A DNA stretch of 62,445 nucleotides, counting the filler, from Dugesia japonica (taxonomy: Eukaryota): NCBI GenBank assembly GCA_001938525.1. It is 6 parts of 6 records of this genome, joined end to end, with 100 filler letters (N's around TTAATTAATTAA, not from the genome) between each part and the next. Parts side by side here need not be neighbours in the genome. Positions count along the whole stretch, not along the records: positions 1 to 8,462 come from MQRL01575401.1; 5 more parts are not named here. The stretch is one strand, 5' to 3'. The translations under genes were made by a program, and so were the position numbers. The notes beneath the pieces were generated by a model. That model was not told where the DNA came from. It did not search any database and saw only the letters and a list, made by a program, of their open reading frames with translations. This document shows, one piece after another, positions 1 to 8,462 of the stretch (the stretch's first letter is position 1; each line of letters starts with the position of its first letter).

Positions 1-581
1 AATAGGGAAACAACGATTTGAATACTCATATAGCAGCGTACTTATAAAAAAGAACAATAAATACGAATTTTACCAAAAATGGGGACTAGAAACTGACAAC
101 ACTAAACTCATGTGGCATAATCGGTTGGCTGAATAATATCAACAATAAAATTTAATAAAGACAACTGTGAAAATTATTAATTAAAATATCCAAATCAAAT
201 AAATAAAGAAAATTTTCATTTATTAATAAAGAAACCCAAAAGTTAATTAAAATTAATCTAATAAAAAGGAAATATTAAAGGAAAATTTCCACATCAAATT
301 ACCAATATGTGAATTGTAAACGACTTATTAATATAAATAATAAATTAAACGAAATTTGTTTTGAAAATAAAATTAAAAGAGAAACGAAAACTCCTGATCT
401 CTTCGATAAACATCAATCTAAAACTTACTTCTTTTTAATAAAATGATTAGGTATAATTATTTTTATTTTTTTTAATAACACAACAATTATCTCTTCAAAA
501 AAAATATAAAGATGAGATCAAACTCATTACCAGCTGAAAAAATGGGCGAATCAAAAACATAATAAAACAATCAATAATTGT

Positions 582-597
582 GGTCCTAAAGAGGACC
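582..597 (-). terminator. Histone-type 3' stem-loop, copy 1 (GGTCCT CTTT AGGACC followed by ACAA), not attached to a histone ORF
   Basis: Minus strand reads gagaatgagtaat-GGTCCTCTTTAGGACC-acaattattgattg. The 6-bp stem, 4-nt pyrimidine loop and 3' ACAA match the histone 3' stem-loop consensus. 21 nt are identical to the copy at 3275-3290. Confidence 0.6.
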
Positions 598-737
598 ATT
601 ACTCATTCTCAGTTTATCTAGATCCGGCATAATTTAATACAAAAAACTAATATCCAAAACAATAACTAAATTATCATCACCATAGAAAATTAATTTATTT
701 TGCTTTTGGCATCCCAATATAGTGATTTGATATATTG

Positions 738-1340
738 ATCTGGATGATCATTCAAATTCTCTACGAGTTCCATTTCCAAATCTACTACCAACATTACCAA
801 CTTCAGAACATTTTCATACATCTAAAATGAAATTCTACCATTTGAATCACCAACAAGAACATATAATGAAAAAAACCCAACGTTACAATATTATTACTCA
901 CGAAAATCTGGCCGCCAAATACTAAATTGTCCTAAAAAAGGATGTCGTAACAGTAGAAATAATATGAAAGAAGGCGAAGAAGTGCGTTGGGCAAACGGAA
1001 AATTAAAAATATGTACAAAACAAACTACGGGTAAAAGAGAGGAAATTTTGTACATGTTGAGCATAAATTCCGAAGAACCGCCTATTTTTGTTACAGTAGG
1101 AAAAAATAATCAATCATCTTGCAAAATTAACGGTATCATCGTAAATCAGGAAGAAAAGAAATTGAAAAAAGATACAATCAGAAAAAACTTGGAGGAGGCA
1201 GAAGCAAAGGGTAGGGAACATTTCAACAAATTATGAAACGGGAACAAGAAGAGAACAAAACTTATCAAGAATTCTCGGCCACAATAAAGGAGTTGACAAA
1301 AGTTGCAAATATAACAGATGAGCAAAGTATAATAGAATAT
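738..1340 (+). pseudogene. Degraded ORF of unknown function (includes ORF 964-1236)
   Basis: The reading frame extends upstream of the annotated ATG (NEILPFESPTRTYNEKNPTLQYYYSRKSGRQILNCPKKGCRNSRNNMKEGEE...) with a frameshift near 825. No family recognised. Confidence 0.25.
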
Positions 1341-1670
1341 TTCAGATTGGGTTTTATAGTGTTCAATAAACATTATCTGAAATTTTATAGTAGTCGATAA
1401 AGATTTTATGAAANNNNNNNNNNNNNNNNNNNNNNNNNNNNNNNNNNNNNNNNNNNNNNNNNNNNNNNNNNNNNNNNNNNNNNNNNNNNNNNNNNNNNNN
1501 NNNNNNNNNNNNNNNNNNNNNNNNNNNNNGAAGTCTCCAAATATTATATGAAATTGCACAGTAGTCGATAAAATTTTTATGAAATTGCACAGTAGTCGAT
1601 AAATATTTTATGAAATTGCACTGAAGTCGCAAATTATTTTATGAAATTGTATTATAACATTTTTTGAAAT
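1340..1670. repeat. Minisatellite, ~31-bp unit (gaaattgcacagtagtcgataaatattttat)
   Basis: Several tandem copies on both sides of the N gap at 1414-1529. Confidence 0.8.
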
Positions 1671-1914
1671 TTACATGAAGTATGCAAGATGAATGAATAA
1701 TATGTTGCATTACATATAAAGTTTTTGTCGAGTACAAGTGTGAGAATAGTGCTATATGAATGCTATTCACTCGGCATTCTAATATTACTCAATGAAAAGG
1801 AATACATGAAAATTATTGATTTCAATGCAAACAAGTTTCATGACCCACTAATGTATTCATATAATTACTTGGTAAAAATTGGTTTCAATTGTTAAAATTA
1901 TAGTGGAAAATATC

Positions 1915-2160
1915 TAAACATACACAATACTCGTTACCAACAACTATATCAACACAATATTTGCTATCCTCAAGTCTTAATACTTAATGCTCGCTACAAT
2001 TACGTCTTAACATATACAATACTCACTGTCGTCAAGTATTACCATACACAATACTCGCTACCATTAAGTCTTAACATGTACAATACTCACTAACAACATC
2101 TATATCAACGCTATACTCGCTACCAACAGCTCTTAACATACAGAATACTCGTTATCATCA
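1915..2160. repeat. Minisatellite, ~34-bp unit (aacatacacaatactcgctacc...gtctt)
   Basis: About 7 diverged tandem copies with a recurring aatactc core. Confidence 0.75.
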
Positions 2161-2250
2161 TTTACCTATTAATTATTCAGTTGATAGTTTAATCTGTTCA
2201 TCGCTTATTTCATATAGTCAACAGTAGGTAGATAGTAGCGCACTGAATCA

Positions 2251-2436
2251 GCCCCGCCAAGGTATTTTTTCCCCAAGGTCATTGATCTAGTGTACTAGAT
2301 TCTTATTGGTTGAAATAATTCAAGGTCAAATTTTCAAGGTCAGAGTGATATAGTATACTCAGTTCTGATTGGGGGAACATTTAAAGGTAGAATGGATGTA
2401 GATCATGACATTACTATGACAATCTTTATTAGGTCA
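2251..2436. promoter_or_regulatory. Cluster of GC box, nuclear-receptor (NR5A/ERR-type) half-sites and CCAAT boxes near the putative Polinton terminus
   Basis: GCCCCGCC 2251-2258; CCAAGGTCA 2273-2281; TCAAGGTCA 2320-2328 and 2334-2342; AGGTCA 2431-2436; ATTGG at 2305 and 2368; short hairpin atctag-tgta-ctagat 2285-2300. Confidence 0.45.
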
Positions 2437-2696
2437 ATGTCAACTATCATCCAGGCAGAAATAATATGAAAGTTCTCCGGGCAGACTTAGTATTAAAATT
2501 TCCTGTACAGGTTTAATATTTTTTGTTTTGTTGTATAAATTTTTTTTGTTTTAATTTATTAATTTAAAATGTCATTTTTTTAAACATTTGTTTTAAGTAT
2601 ATTTGTTACACTACTAATGAAAATAAAAAACAATTTTCAAACAAATATTTATTTGATAACATATAGTTAACAATCAAAATAGTCAAATTTATCTGT

Positions 2697-3230
2697 TTAT
2701 TTTTCTAAAAAGTCCGCACCTTTAATTATCAGTATTTCTTCTTCTATCATTGGTACATCTTCGACTGTTTTGTACATCGACCATCATTTCAACATCTGTA
2801 TATATTGTATATTTTCTAAGTTATTCATTATTTAAATAGTAAATAAATAAAAATATCATACCTATAGCTTCTACAAATGTTTCCTTCTCCTCTTCTTCAT
2901 TCAATTCTACAAAATTTTGTTGATTTTCATTAGAATAATTGATATCAATATATTCAACCATATCATCTATAACTTTATCTAAATTCATATATTGATAAAA
3001 TGAAAAATATTGATTTTGTTTATATTGACCATTGTTGCAACTTTATTTTCTTTGTTAAACTTGCATTCTTATTGCACACCTACATTACTCAAGCTCTTTG
3101 TATACTTGCATTGATGTTAAATTTTCTTTGTTTAACTTTCATTCATGTTGCACATGTATGACTCATGTTTTTGATGACTTGCATCTGTATTGCATTTTCT
3201 TTGTTTAAGTTTCTTTATCGAACTTATAAT
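2697..3230 (-). pseudogene. Small spliced acidic gene downstream of polB (Polinton accessory gene, degraded)
   Basis: Exon-like blocks DKVIDDMVEYIDINYSNENQQNFVELNEEEEKETFVEAI and ...EDVPMIEEEILIIKGADFLEK* are separated by a 46-nt GTATGA...TAG intron (2861-2816). There is a possible 51-nt intron (3029-2979), ~74-bp internal repeats at 3046-3215 and AATAAA on the minus strand near 2650. Confidence 0.4.
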
Positions 3231-3274
3231 TTTGAGCCCAAAAGAGGATTGATATACTCTCAATCCATATTTGT

Positions 3275-3290
3275 GGTCCTAAAGAGGACC
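3275..3290 (-). terminator. Histone-type 3' stem-loop, copy 2, in sense orientation downstream of polB
   Basis: Minus strand gtgaacgtgtact-GGTCCTCTTTAGGACC-acaaatatggattg lies 123 nt after the polB TAA (3414-3416). A 47-nt GTATGA...TAG intron-like segment (3374-3328) lies between them. Confidence 0.7.
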
Positions 3291-3413
3291 AGTACACGTT
3301 CACATATATACATTTTTCTTCTTTTTCCTAATTATAAAAGTTTTAAATATTATCTAAATAAAATAAAGTCATACCTTGAAGTAGATTGGATTGATCTTGA
3401 TTGATGAAAAGTA

Positions 3414-6400
3414 TTACAATGTATAATGCCCGTATGGTAAGCTTAAATTTTTTTCTGTCCATATTCGTTTATCATCCTTATTAGACAGAGCTACTTTCTT
3501 ACTTTTGATACTGCAGAGCTGATGATTTATTGATGTTATTCGAAATTGCTCTACTGAGACCGTTTCATTATTGTTATAACAGTCAGGATATGACTGATGA
3601 CAAATTCCAGTGTTTTTCAATGTTATGGCCTTAGCTTTTATTGATTCTTTCTCGCTAAGTAGGCTATAACACTTCGGTCTCAAAAATATCCATTCTTGAT
3701 ATTTCTTCCCTTTACTCTCATCNNNNNNNNNNNNNNNNNNNNNNNNNNNNNNNNNNNNNNNNNNNNNNNNNNNNNTGTTGTAATTGGACGTATCTAATAG
3801 CTGATCCTTCTTCATTAATCCGGTAAGTTTTTTCAAACTTATGTCTACCACTTCTAGGAAGAAACTATCGGTATCACCGGCTACAATATTTATCTTACAA
3901 TTCTCTTCCTGTCTGTACTTTTCCAACTGAATGTACTGTAATTGGTACATTACTGACTTTGAGAGGTCTAGTACAGTCTGTCCGATGTAGCTCGGTCGAT
4001 CCAAACAAACAATAGCTTTGTTCATTAAAACAGCTATTAGATCATTATCAATTTTAGTTGTTTTTCTGAATCCAGCTTTTGATGTATATGTCATCAATTT
4101 TTTAGCCAAATTACACAATCTTAAATTAATTCTTTTCTTTAAATTCTCAACTGTTTTACCATACAGGCTATTATTTATAAGGTTATAATAATTCTTCTCC
4201 AACTCTGATTTACATTCTGATCTTAATTTAGTGTTAACATCTATATATTGTTTGAAAATAGATGCCTGGCTGAACTTTACTTCTCTATGAACCTTTGTTA
4301 TTTGTACACCCAATTGCAAATAAATTTGCAGCAATCTCCAATGTGTAACATAACTTTGTTTCGGGTAATGAGTCAGCATTAATATTTTCACCTTACTACC
4401 TGAAGCACTTTGATGTTCTGCTGCAACAGGTAAATCATTTAGTTTATCTTGGATTTCTGCTGGTATAACCATATCTACTTCCAATGTGTATCGATATGGT
4501 AACAATTTGAGATCTCTTATTCTACATTCTTTCAATACTAAATCCAATCCAGTATATACCAACTCGAAATCGCAATAGGGCAATTTCTGACTTAATGCCC
4601 ATTCACATAGATTATTAATATCTATATATAATAAATCTGTATTTTCATTACTTACAACATGGTGTTTACTTACAAATGTTAGCCCGCCTCTTATACCCCC
4701 TTCAAAAAAGGTATACAAATCATTATCTGTCAACAATTCTATAGGCTCATTTAATGACATCAATGCAGATGCTCAACTCATACCCGGGATGCCAAAGAAT
4801 GTTAATGGCTCCAAATTATTGTGTGCCAAAGATTTATTTCTGAACTGTTGAAAGAAATCGGCTAACAAAAACACATCTAGTTTCAAATATACCAGCATAC
4901 AAAAGAGTGTTGCATCTTGTTATAGTCAAAATTTCGACTGCTTTTTGATAATCTTGCTCACTAACTTCCTCCCATCTTGGTGGTATTGTTGTTTCACCCA
5001 GAACTTGCAAACTGGTTGCATAATTATAAGGAAATATCCCCTTTGAGATTGTTAATCTGCTATCTTTAATTTAATTTGCTGTCTTTTAAGGATTTGACTG
5101 CTTCGTCCAATGAAGAATTAATAAATTAGTACGAGTCAATAAATCTGATTGTAATTTCTTTCAGATGTCCAATGAGACATAGGAATTTTTCTGATGTTGT
5201 TGGTATACACGATATGGTCAATGCGGAAATTTATTTAATCCGTACTTTAATATGTGGTGGAGGTCATATCCTCTCAAATTATGGAAGACTACTGGTAATT
5301 GATAGTTTATTCTTCTGCTCAAATTGCATTTATTACAGGCAGCTTCTATATACTTACCTGTAAAATGGTCATGATCCCGAACTGGATTACATAAAGGTTT
5401 TTTACACAAATGACATATTGTACTATGTTTAAATTCGATTTCTTGGTCTGAGCTCATAATTCGTTTCTTTTTCCTTCTTTGATATAATATAGATATACTA
5501 TATTATTACCAATTTCCTCCACTGCCTTTAGAAATTCATATAGGCATTCATTTTCAATAAACTGGCTGTATTTGACTTCATTGCTAAAGTTATTTACCAA
5601 CAACAGTCCAGCTGAAACAGCTAAATGTTTCTGGAATTTTTTTTCATCGCTTGGTAATATTGATTTGAAATCACCATATATTTAAAAAAGGGTGGAGTTA
5701 TAGTTTTGGAGTAATCTTAAAATTCTAGATTCTTTTCTCTCGGCATCTTGCATAATATGGTGGCCGTCTGAATTCTCTCGCAAAGTGGCTCATGAGTATT
5801 GTAAGCAGTATTATCCTTAAATTCATTAAGACAATTTTCACACCAGATTGATTGAATTCGAACATCACCAATTTTAATATCCCTGTTCATCAATCTATTC
5901 AAATTCATTATTACAATAAATTGATCTTATCTCCATCGCATTTACACCGATGTATAATGTCTAAATTCGGATGCTTCATGATAACATCTTCATCGTCCTC
6001 AATTGATTAAGGATTCCATGAGAAAACATTAATTTATAAGCCCGGGTTTTGTTTTTTCAAATTTTGGTATATCTGTAAGCTTCATTGGCATGTCCTCTTC
6101 ATCAAATACAAGTTCGGACATGTATTTTTGATAATTGGACACCCTACATTTATTATCTTTAACTTTATCTTGTTTAAGAATAGCGAAGATACTATATATA
6201 AAACACTTATTGTCAGTGTTCTGAATATTTAAAATTGCTTTTTTTTATAAAAGTTGACTGGGTAGGTATATAACTAAGGCCAGATAATCGGCTTATATCA
6301 GATACCTTGGTAATCTTAAAATATATTTCCAGTATGCTGCTCAGTATCCAACTAGACCCGAGTTCGCTTCGTATAGCTATCTTTTCCTTTGACTGTTTTA

Positions 6401-7069
6401 TTCCATCTTCAAAAAAAGAATTGCTTAATGCAACAGCTTGATTCGACAATCTACAAGTTTTTGTTTCTTCTTCTTTTTCGAATTCAAATTGGATCTTGAT
6501 ATTTTTTAATTCTTCAATAANTTTGAATAACTGCTCAATCAATGAGTTTGGTAAAACGATTTCTCTCGTATTCCACCTTGAAACATCCATTTTTAATATC
6601 TGGTGACATTTATATAAGTCACTTTCTATTATCACATCTTCATTGAGGGAGCCAACAACTTGTGCTTCTTCTTCACCTATAAAACTTTGCATGGCAATAT
6701 CTTCTTCATCCATTTCATCTATGATTTGAAAATTGCTACAATCATCTTCAATTATCTGAGATTCCACCTTTATTTCCTCATTTGAGATAACTAATAAATC
6801 TTCTTTTCGTTTTTTCATTGGGGGACGATCTATCTCTTTATCTAATATCATCCTTAATACTTGTTTCTTATTTATTCTAAACTGCCCTAAGTGGTCTGCA
6901 TGCAACCTATAAAAGTCTAAATATTCACCTATTCATATAGACCTACATGATGGGCATATGTAATACTTTTCCCCATAAAAGGATTAAGCATAGTATCTCT
7001 CCATAATACTATGGCAGTCACCTTTATGAGTCCGATTTGTACAAGAATGTTTGTACATTGTACAACATT
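3414..7069 (-). pseudogene. polB: Protein-primed DNA polymerase B of Polinton type, with endonuclease-VII-like insert; frameshifted
   Basis: ORFs 6213-6905, 5717-5908, 5218-5457 and 3414-4763 plus intervening frames give DNKCFIYS, GDFKS (ExoI), CHLC...VRDHDHFTGKY...CNKCN (endo VII-like), FHNLRGYD (ExoII), RFIDS, GIFPY, LKLDVFLLAD (ExoIII), EGGIRGG, YIDINNL (motif A), NNSLYGKT (motif B), GDTDS (motif C) and LRPKCYS. The N-terminus has a CPSC...H..H zinc-finger-like segment. Confidence 0.93.
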
Positions 7070-7987
7070 CTGGAAAAAATAAGTTGATTACATTAAAGTT
7101 TCATTTAAAAAGTATCATAAATTAAATTATAAAATAAATAAAAACTAATTTTTATCATAAACAGGAGCAGCAACAACAAGAGTAGCAACAACAGAAGCAT
7201 CATAATTCTAAAATAAATAATTTTAACAACTATCAACTGTTGATAATAAGTTTGCTTTAATTAAACTCTTCCTCTTGATACATCATTCACCTTGATTTAA
7301 ATTATTATAATTCTAAAATAAATTAATAATCATTAAATAATAAAAGTAAATTTACATTATCCATCATTAAACTTGTCGAATTCATATTTCGTTTATCGTT
7401 TATATTGACCATAACCTGAATGCGCATAATTAATAATATTGAAAATAGTTTACCTTTTCTTCGCTTAAATTATTATTTTTGATAATCTAAAATGTATATA
7501 TATAAAAGAGATATTAAAAATAACAAACTTACGTACCAAAATTATCGCTTTTAAAAATAGTTTTAATAAAAATGTGAAAATTTTTAAAAGTATCTACTTT
7601 AGTTTTTCTATCCCCTTTGTATGTGTGTATCATAATTTTTTCTATCCCCATTGATAAGGTGTATCAATAATTTTAAAATACCACAAAGTAGTATATTTAG
7701 TTGTGAAAAGAAATAATTTTTTTTGATATAATTTTAAAGTACTGCAACGTAGTATATTGTTACATTTACCAAGTTATTAGTCATGACAATAACAAAGGCA
7801 TGTTTTTGATTATAACAAAGGTCAATTAACTGCTTTATATTTTAATGATTTTAACAAAGATTAATTAATTATTTTTAAATTTATATAAAAATAAATCAAA
7901 CAAATATTTTCATATAATACATTTATTTACATGCAACATATACATTTTCAACTACAATGTTGATTATTTTTCACATAACGTCAATTT

Positions 7988-8292
7988 TCAGTTAGAATGT
8001 TGATTTTTAAGCCACAATTGACAATTTTGACCGCCGGTTGTTGTAAACAGATTTTGAAATCTAAATTTGCTAAATTCAATTGGCTTGGATATTTTTGAGA
8101 GATGTGAGACCAACAAATGTAGATAATAAAATCCAAGCGGATCAAAAACTGAAATAATTCAGTTTCCAACAAGATTTGATGTATCAGTATTGACGATTAA
8201 GGCTTTATTAACTAGAAAGTATGATAGTTTGTCTAATGGATACACCCCAACCATGACGATCCCAACAATTTTGATCCGACTTGATTAATCTG
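7988..8292 (-). pseudogene. Adenain-like (adenovirus/Polinton) cysteine maturation protease, degraded
   Basis: Manual translation with one frameshift gives QINQVGSKLLGSSWLG/VYPLDKLSYFLVNKALIVNTDTSNLVGN*IISVFDPLG...RFQNLFTTTGGQNCQLWL. This matches the GVYPxD, LIVNTD, FDxxG and Q....CGxxC pattern. The catalytic His segment is deleted and the Cys is mutated. AATAAA follows on the minus strand (7922-7927). Confidence 0.75.
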
Positions 8293-8364
8293 AAAAGAAC
8301 TAATAAAGTAAAATATTGAAATTAAATACTATACTTACTTCATAATTTTGATTATTTGATTATA

Positions 8365-8460
8365 TTAGATATTGTTTACACTAACATTAGTATTTATTTG
8401 GATTTTGCTTTCAAATACTCCATATATTATAACATATGCTGGCGCAGTCAAAGCTTTAGC
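8365..8460 (-). CDS. C-terminus of Polinton major capsid protein (double jelly-roll), 5' part beyond the scaffold edge
   Basis: AKALTAPAYVIIYGVFESKIQINTNVSVNNI* resembles the Polinton MCP end (F..AL....IVYAEF...I.ID....V). It lies directly upstream of the protease. Confidence 0.55.
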   Translation of the reverse strand, partial: AKALTAPAYVIIYGVFESKIQINTNVSVNNI

Positions 8461-8462
8461 AA

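Follow-up and report, generated by a model that had tools for sequence, protein, structure and literature searches.

Two copies of a histone-type 3' signal beside mobile DNA suggest that mobile elements borrow the histone mRNA pathway in this lineage

The DNA analysed here, called the window throughout, is a stretch of 62,445 nucleotides (filler included) joined from six parts of the Dugesia japonica assembly GCA_001938525.1; positions 1 to 8,462, within which the features of Table 1 lie, come from record MQRL01575401.1. This part carries a decayed gene for the protein-primed family-B DNA polymerase (pPolB) of Maverick/Polinton elements and, on the same strand, two copies of a hairpin resembling the one that ends replication-dependent histone mRNAs. 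The last 449 codons of pPolB (3417-4763) are open, interrupted only by an N gap at 3723-3775, and are closed by a TAA at 3414-3416. Decay is evident further upstream: an in-frame TGA stands at 4773-4775, and the upstream pieces of the gene match one continuous ORF in a related contig (L002) but occupy at least five different frames. A stretch resembling Endonuclease VII (Endonuclease_7-like) lies within the pPolB region at 5221-5457.

The assignment to Maverick/Polinton elements draws on homology. Over the last 449 codons the window polymerase is 76%, 70%, and 71% identical to the metagenome proteins P0001, P0002, and P0003, and most of its 119 relatives carry PF03175; together these identify a protein-primed family-B polymerase. 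Scanned against Pfam, the window ORF itself had no match with an E of 0.1 or less; its translation contains a DTDS motif. In a relative on a 28-kb contig (L001), the polymerase gene has as neighbours an rve integrase gene and another whose match to Pox_A32 (packaging-ATPase-like) is faint, and two further long contigs (L044 and L045) hold the same gene set. Because the polymerase of these relatives sits with an rve integrase and an A32-like gene, the window element is, on its homologies, a Maverick/Polinton. It resembles known members in its protein-primed polymerase and Endonuclease-VII-like stretch, as its relatives do in their integrase and A32-like gene; it differs from them, as far as the literature searched reports, in the histone-type 3' signal that follows its polymerase gene. 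Of the gene set of such elements (integrase, packaging ATPase, protease, and capsid genes between terminal inverted repeats), a protease-like remnant is all that was seen beside the polymerase in this part of the window, which does not include the ends of the element. A protein with a TBP domain (PF00352) was also observed beside the A32-like ATPase gene in L044 (167-349) and L045 (13925-14368), both Maverick relatives from one ENA sample.

Table 1. Features at positions 1 to 8,462 of the window, with the evidence on which each is placed
Feature	Position	Strand	Basis and remarks
Copy 1, three-part histone-type 3' signal	568-611	minus	Rfam, cassette alignment, pattern search, R1
Copy 1, parts	5' box TGAGAATG 611-604; stem-loop 597-582; ACA 581-579; 3' box TTGATTG 574-568	minus	
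Sole sense ORF upstream of copy 1	690-821	minus	43 codons, stop at 690-692; preceded by AG, a possible splice acceptor
Small acidic gene downstream of copy 2	2700-2988	minus	Two exons, 66-nt intron; ends at AATAAA, no hairpin
Copy 2, three-part signal	3261-3304	minus	Rfam, cassette alignment, pattern search, R1
Copy 2, parts	5' box TGTGAACG 3304-3297; stem-loop 3290-3275; ACA 3274-3272; 3' box TGGATTG 3267-3261	minus	
Possible GT..AG intron in the pPolB 3' UTR, between stop and hairpin	3328-3374	minus	47 nt; candidate, from sequence
Maverick/Polinton pPolB gene, decayed	3414-7651	minus	Homology; start put tentatively near 7651
Promoter-proximal motif close to ACTACGTTGCGGTATTTTAAA, two copies upstream of pPolB	7733-7753, 7672-7692	minus	Repeat search, motif comparison
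Maverick protease-like gene remnant	7991-8284	minus	Matches L001 7820-8122 (faint adenovirus-protease-like match); then AATAAA, no hairpin

Copy 2 lies in the sense strand of pPolB, 123 nt past the stop, with no AATAAA in between. If the candidate intron in this interval were spliced, the hairpin would start 76 nt past the stop; GT..AG stretches of 45-48 nt occur at the matching place in two relatives (L003 and L004). Tandem repeats, two blocks of a unit of about 31 nt and one of a 73-76-nt unit, were also seen at 1530-1650, 1910-2160, and 3021-3216. The 73-76-nt block separates copy 2 from the point where the small acidic gene starts, and the 31-nt blocks could be a sign of the Maverick's end region.

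No credible gene stands before copy 1. The original prediction had warned that no intact sense-strand ORF was visible upstream of it, and that caveat stands: the only one there is the 43-codon ORF of Table 1, for which no relatives were found and whose status as a gene is doubtful for that reason. The better ORFs near copy 1 are on the opposite strand. On the plus strand, 964-1400 contains two ORFs, of 90 and 55 aa, which a frame change connects and which have a gag-like appearance by eye (TDEQSIIEYFRLGF); relative to them, copy 1 is upstream and on the other strand. They gave no Pfam match and no relatives among the fetched loci, and Pfam offered no family for the small ORFs of the window in general. 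Copy 1 may be, and probably is, an orphaned signal of this kind that stems from another mobile element.

The two hairpins are identical, with a 6-bp stem (GGTCCT/AGGACC), a CTTT loop, and an ACA tail, just as the original prediction had described and placed them. A degenerate histone-hairpin pattern matched this part of the window at 582-597 and 3275-3290 only, against a chance expectation of 0.01 from 200 shuffles, none of which held two matches; a chance origin of the hairpins is thereby ruled out. In a collection of viral contigs the hairpin pattern had no exact match. A repeat search paired 568-611 with 3261-3304 over 44 nt at 86% identity, which bears out the earlier observation that the likeness extends beyond the hairpin, with the addition (see below) that this likeness is not private to the window copies. 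In the predicted RNA folds of both copies the hairpin forms the core. A longer helix joining the two flanking boxes, seen in the single-sequence fold of copy 1, was set aside, since RNAalifold retains the 6-bp stem only. No further diverged copies were found in this part of the window with Rfam (to E 10) or with a custom covariance model, R1, run with filters off.

As such, the hairpin belongs to a known type of element. On the minus strand, the Rfam model Histone3 (RF00032) gives copy 1 a score of 25.4 bits (E 0.001) and copy 2 one of 23.7 bits (E 0.0045); the covariance-model test put forward with the original prediction thus gives two matches that are significant in this search, yet both lie under the gathering score of 34. 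Both stems have the 6 bp of the histone 3' signal, recognized by SLBP (stem-loop binding protein) and the U7 snRNP, with G-C, G-C at the base and U-A at the top; both enclose a pyrimidine-rich loop of four bases and are followed directly by the ACA, as in histone mRNAs, whose AC-rich tail (ACA or ACCCA) contains the site of cleavage. A conserved box stands downstream, at the place where a U7-pairing element would be expected, and in relatives the signal starts 21-36 nt past stops. The differences are equally plain. The loop, CUUU, begins with C rather than having U at positions 1 and 3; the downstream box, UUGAUUG, is not purine-rich; there is an extra conserved 5' box, UGAGAAYG; and the signal follows a transposon polymerase gene. 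Neither copy comes soon after the stop of a replication-dependent histone gene, and a tblastn search with every ORF of the fetched histone contigs found no histone coding sequence in this part of the window, in agreement with the original claim that no histone ORF precedes either copy.

A C-first loop is typical of nematode histone genes, and the histone hairpins of Caenorhabditis elegans reportedly have C as the first loop base, as the CUUU of the window does. To place this variant, JGI metagenome contigs were scanned for hairpins with a C-first loop, with Y/R permitted at stem pair 3. The scan gave 39 loci, the majority of them ordinary genes for H2A, H2B, H3, or H4, in which the hairpin follows the stop after 25-56 nt. 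Because CUUU follows real H2A, H2B, H3, and H4 genes in these loci, the C-first loop is, as far as these contigs tell, a lineage variant and not a defect. Many of the C-loop histone genes have CCCAAC ahead of the stem, and ten AT-rich contigs (GC 0.25-0.30) have the flanks of the window copies as well as the hairpin. The host need not be a nematode, since among named proteins the nearest to the H2B of these AT-rich contigs are arthropod H2Bs, not fungal ones; a literature search for SLBP in early-diverging fungi found nothing linking the two. The relatives are short metagenome contigs, which need not come from the species of the window, and the comparison of signals rests on those contigs.

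An alignment of 14 cassettes, as we call the hairpin together with its flanks, defines a signal of three parts. The 5' box, TGAGAAYG, stands 7-14 nt before the stem; the ACA tail is invariant in all 14; and the 3' box, TTGATTG, is present in every one with minor variants, 10-16 nt past the stem, where a U7-type downstream element would sit. The same two boxes stand on either side of the hairpin behind an intact gene for H2B (L043; PF00125, E 3e-22) and behind an H3-like gene (L009; E 1.5e-27). At the level of sequence the window signal is thus the same as that of true histone genes in related contigs, and the three-part arrangement looks like the normal histone 3' signal of this AT-rich lineage, the boxes being seemingly required parts of it. 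Because the boxes also flank the hairpins of genuine H2B and H3 genes, the similarity of the flanks is a property of the signal itself. The original prediction of a portable 3'-end cassette shared by mobile-element genes is accordingly retained in part: a histone-type signal does stand beside mobile-element, non-histone sequence, but the similarity of the flanks alone is no proof of common descent.

The covariance model R1 was built from this alignment, and its E-values are rough. It scores copy 1 at 78.5 bits and copy 2 at 72.1 bits; all AT-rich cassettes reach at least 67.8 bits, and the histone hairpins of other lineages at most 41. Unlike the window copies, then, the C-loop histone contigs outside the AT-rich group have different flanks and correspondingly low scores (at most 41 bits versus 72-78 bits). 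Stem pair 3 is U-A in six cassettes, C-G in eight, and mispaired in none. An independent R1 match of 53 bits, outside the training set, lies in the Maverick contig L001 (1766-1844, minus strand), where pair 1 has changed from G-C to A-U in compensatory fashion and both boxes are retained. The stem covariation that had been named as a test is present, at pair 3 and at pair 1 of L001, but is limited: within the alignment it is seen at one pair only, and it is thin because the search that yielded the loci used a pattern in which the remaining stem positions were fixed.

The association of the signal with genes of mobile elements is clearest in relatives that share a promoter motif with the window. 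The ACTACGTTGCGGTATTTTAAA-type motif found in two copies upstream of pPolB also occurs, sometimes doubled, upstream of two families of intact ORFs in five contigs (L006, L016, L018, L037, and L040), and upstream of a cassette-ending gene in a sixth (L031). The motif-bearing ORFs of L016, L018, L037, and L040 stop 21-35 nt before a cassette in the sense orientation; the ORF of L006 is the exception, with its stop 141 nt before. One of the cassette-ending families shows homology with the N-terminal region of the window pPolB (32% identity over 97 aa, E 8e-6). For the other, a protein search blind to the hairpin recovered five more contigs from other samples, all with the cassette directly past the stop; in one of them, a 46%-identical homologue known from the protein search alone, the cassette starts 21 nt past the stop. 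Pfam has no family for either.

The same tendency appears in the loci as a whole. An ORF of at least 60 aa ending within 150 nt upstream of the hairpin is found on the sense strand at 36 of 50 sites, versus 16 of 50 in the antisense control, and by the same measure at 13 of 18 versus 3 of 18 in the AT-rich group. The sense-strand bias whose lack would have spoken against the original prediction is thus present among the metagenome sites. The L031 gene with the promoter motif deserves separate mention. It is a small gene with a linker-histone domain (168-532; PF00538, E 2e-8, one frame change), with its cassette 26 nt past the stop, and its contig has a weak match to the protease-like ORF of the window; it may be an element-borne H1-like gene.

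Cassettes also occur in or beside transposons of other kinds, and it is here that the main competing explanation arises, namely that the two window copies are broken-off pieces of inverted repeats from Merlin/IS1595- or Tc1-type transposons, lying near a Maverick by chance and outside the pPolB transcription unit. In L039, an IS1595/Merlin-type transposase (PF12762) sits between inverted repeats of at least 173 nt (415-587 and 1580-1752), and each arm contains a complete cassette facing inward, the sense copy being just 5' of the transposase start. In L030, likewise, a cassette stands just 5' of a Tc3/Tc1-type transposase; in both contigs the sense cassette is 5' of the transposase gene, not 3'. 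These are the best DNA matches to the window copies: the L039 arms are 90% identical to copy 1 over 63 nt and 88% identical to copy 2 over 50 nt, and the L030 cassette is 97% identical to the window copies over 34 nt. An origin as transposon ends would also fit the lack of a gene upstream of copy 1 and the lack of a cassette in close pPolB relatives. However, the match to the 173-nt arm of L039 is restricted to those 50-63 nt around the cassette, and no transposase similarity or remnant was found in this part of the window. Both window copies, moreover, are on the minus strand, and the R1 search gave neither an inverted partner nor a third copy in this part of the window, which is not the arrangement of terminal inverted repeats. 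Copy 2 lies in the sense strand and at 3'-UTR distance from the pPolB stop, and the elements that share the promoter motif of the window have a cassette at the same position after intact genes. On balance we regard transposon ends as a rather unlikely source of the copies, and one to be taken seriously.

Read-through transcripts from either side of the L039 transposon would meet a cassette in sense, and these cassettes may cut such transcripts before double-stranded RNA forms. In GC-richer lineages, hairpins are found past the stops of transposase genes: 11 nt past the stop of an intact Tc1/mariner transposase (DDE_3) in L029 (hairpin at 85-103; with L024:170-188), and 29 and 57 nt past those of IS1595-type transposases in L020 (1215-1233) and L027 (142-160).

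A second alternative sees in the copies the 3' ends that dead histone genes left behind, or captured pieces of histone genes, which were never of use to the element. The cassette cannot, after all, be told apart from that of real H2B and H3 genes in the related contigs, and a family from another lineage seems to carry just such a captured piece in coding-like sequence. This Helitron-like/Ulp1-protease-like repeat family (L014, L022, L025, L026, L033, and L035, all from one sample) has the hairpin inside coding-looking sequence and probably reflects a single captured histone 3' fragment that was later amplified. In this part of the window, by contrast, histone coding sequence has left no trace, the hairpin follows the pPolB stop after only 123 nt, and the same arrangement recurs 21-35 nt after intact non-histone ORFs in several diverged relatives; we therefore think this origin quite improbable. 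Least probable of all, and hardly to be expected, is that the palindrome acts at the DNA level, as a site of protein binding, recombination, or replication, and merely looks like the histone RNA hairpin: as DNA, the stem forms a perfect palindrome and is present inside the L039 inverted repeats, but the loop is CTTT and never AAAG, the ACA tail and both boxes are strand-specific, the cassette keeps one orientation relative to the upstream gene, and genuine histone genes have the same signal. Captured or dead histone ends and a DNA palindrome alike fit the strand-specific, stop-linked pattern poorly.

Several observations that speak against a role of the signal in element genes concern the nearest relatives and neighbours of pPolB. 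None of the six closest relatives found by protein search (L001-L004, L044, and L045) has the cassette after pPolB, and the neighbouring genes in the window end at AATAAA. Two of the fetched Maverick relatives have an AATAAA or poly(A) at the polymerase gene, L003 having AATAAA in its 3' region and L004 ending in a poly(A) run. This last contig, whose pPolB is 70% identical to that of the window, ends in 28 A (2190-2217), and to judge from that end the sequence probably represents a polyadenylated transcript, assembled here as a 'metagenome' contig. The cassette of L001 is not behind pPolB; it follows an unknown serine/acidic-rich neighbour gene that runs in the opposite direction. The long Maverick contigs L044 and L045 were considered as possible carriers, and no cassette was found in either.

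RNA reads of four runs were aligned to positions 1-5000; two of the runs were oligo-dT-selected and one is stored only as contigs, and these three cannot show hairpin ends. The four runs yielded a few dozen reads, which come mostly from paralogues, because most are 95-99% alike and only partly aligned. Among these few dozen reads, in four runs of which three are unable to show such ends, there was no pile-up of read ends at either hairpin. A loose read end at 649 was considered as a splice junction and dismissed; there is no GT at the junction, and the read looks like a paralogue.

Taken together, two copies of a histone signal beside mobile DNA suggest that mobile elements borrow the histone mRNA pathway in this lineage. 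The reading we favour, at somewhat better than even chances, is that mobile-element genes use SLBP-type 3' end formation, with copy 2 as the 3' signal of pPolB, here in a copy that is now dead, and copy 1 as an orphan. Both sites would then be full copies of the signal that ends replication-dependent histone mRNAs in an AT-rich, animal-like lineage, composed of the 5' box UGAGAAYG, an SLBP-type hairpin of 6 bp and 4 nt with its ACA, and the 3' box UUGAUUG. Mobile DNA would carry this signal in the window, and copy 2 would end the pPolB gene of a Maverick/Polinton. By analogy with histone mRNAs, we infer SLBP binding, cleavage, and a benefit in timing: SLBP would bind the hairpin of a polymerase II transcript, and cleavage a few bases past the stem, after the ACA, would give a non-polyadenylated mRNA whose stability and translation would follow the histone programme, in S phase or in the germline. 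Such a programme would suit an element that copies its own DNA. Because the window element is decayed, the signal here would be a relic, and since its pPolB is a pseudogene, no selection would act on it now.

A wider form of SLBP-type 3' end formation in mobile elements can also be proposed, tentatively and at clearly less than even chances. Maverick/Polinton-like elements and cut-and-paste transposons of the same AT-rich hosts may have taken over the complete histone 3' signal of the host, such that the mRNAs of polymerase, transposase, and accessory genes are made, stabilized, and translated via SLBP, timed with replication and without poly(A); inward-facing copies in transposon inverted repeats would sever read-through transcripts early enough to keep double-stranded RNA from forming.

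To our knowledge, the histone stem-loop pathway is as a rule seen as exclusive to replication-dependent histone genes. A search of the open-access literature found no report of histone stem-loops on transposon, transposase, or Maverick/Polinton genes, which is no proof of novelty. The nearest case that we found in which histone 3' processing is tied to mobile-element sequences comes from human cells, where U7 snRNA reportedly represses HERV1/LTR12 elements via U7-complementary motifs (PMC11417402). The two cases differ in that the host machinery represses LTRs there, whereas here a gene of the element has a complete hairpin signal in the sense orientation.

If the wider proposal is true, SLBP-coupled element mRNAs would represent a mobile-element strategy not described so far. 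Should elements of three superfamilies (Maverick/Polinton, Merlin/IS1595, and Tc1/mariner) prove to carry a working signal, this would amount to a new S-phase or germline timing for selfish DNA, which would also escape poly(A)-linked surveillance. Hairpin-ended element transcripts would be missed by oligo-dT RNA-seq, and the two flanking boxes would offer a handle on 3' processing in a lineage with a non-textbook signal.
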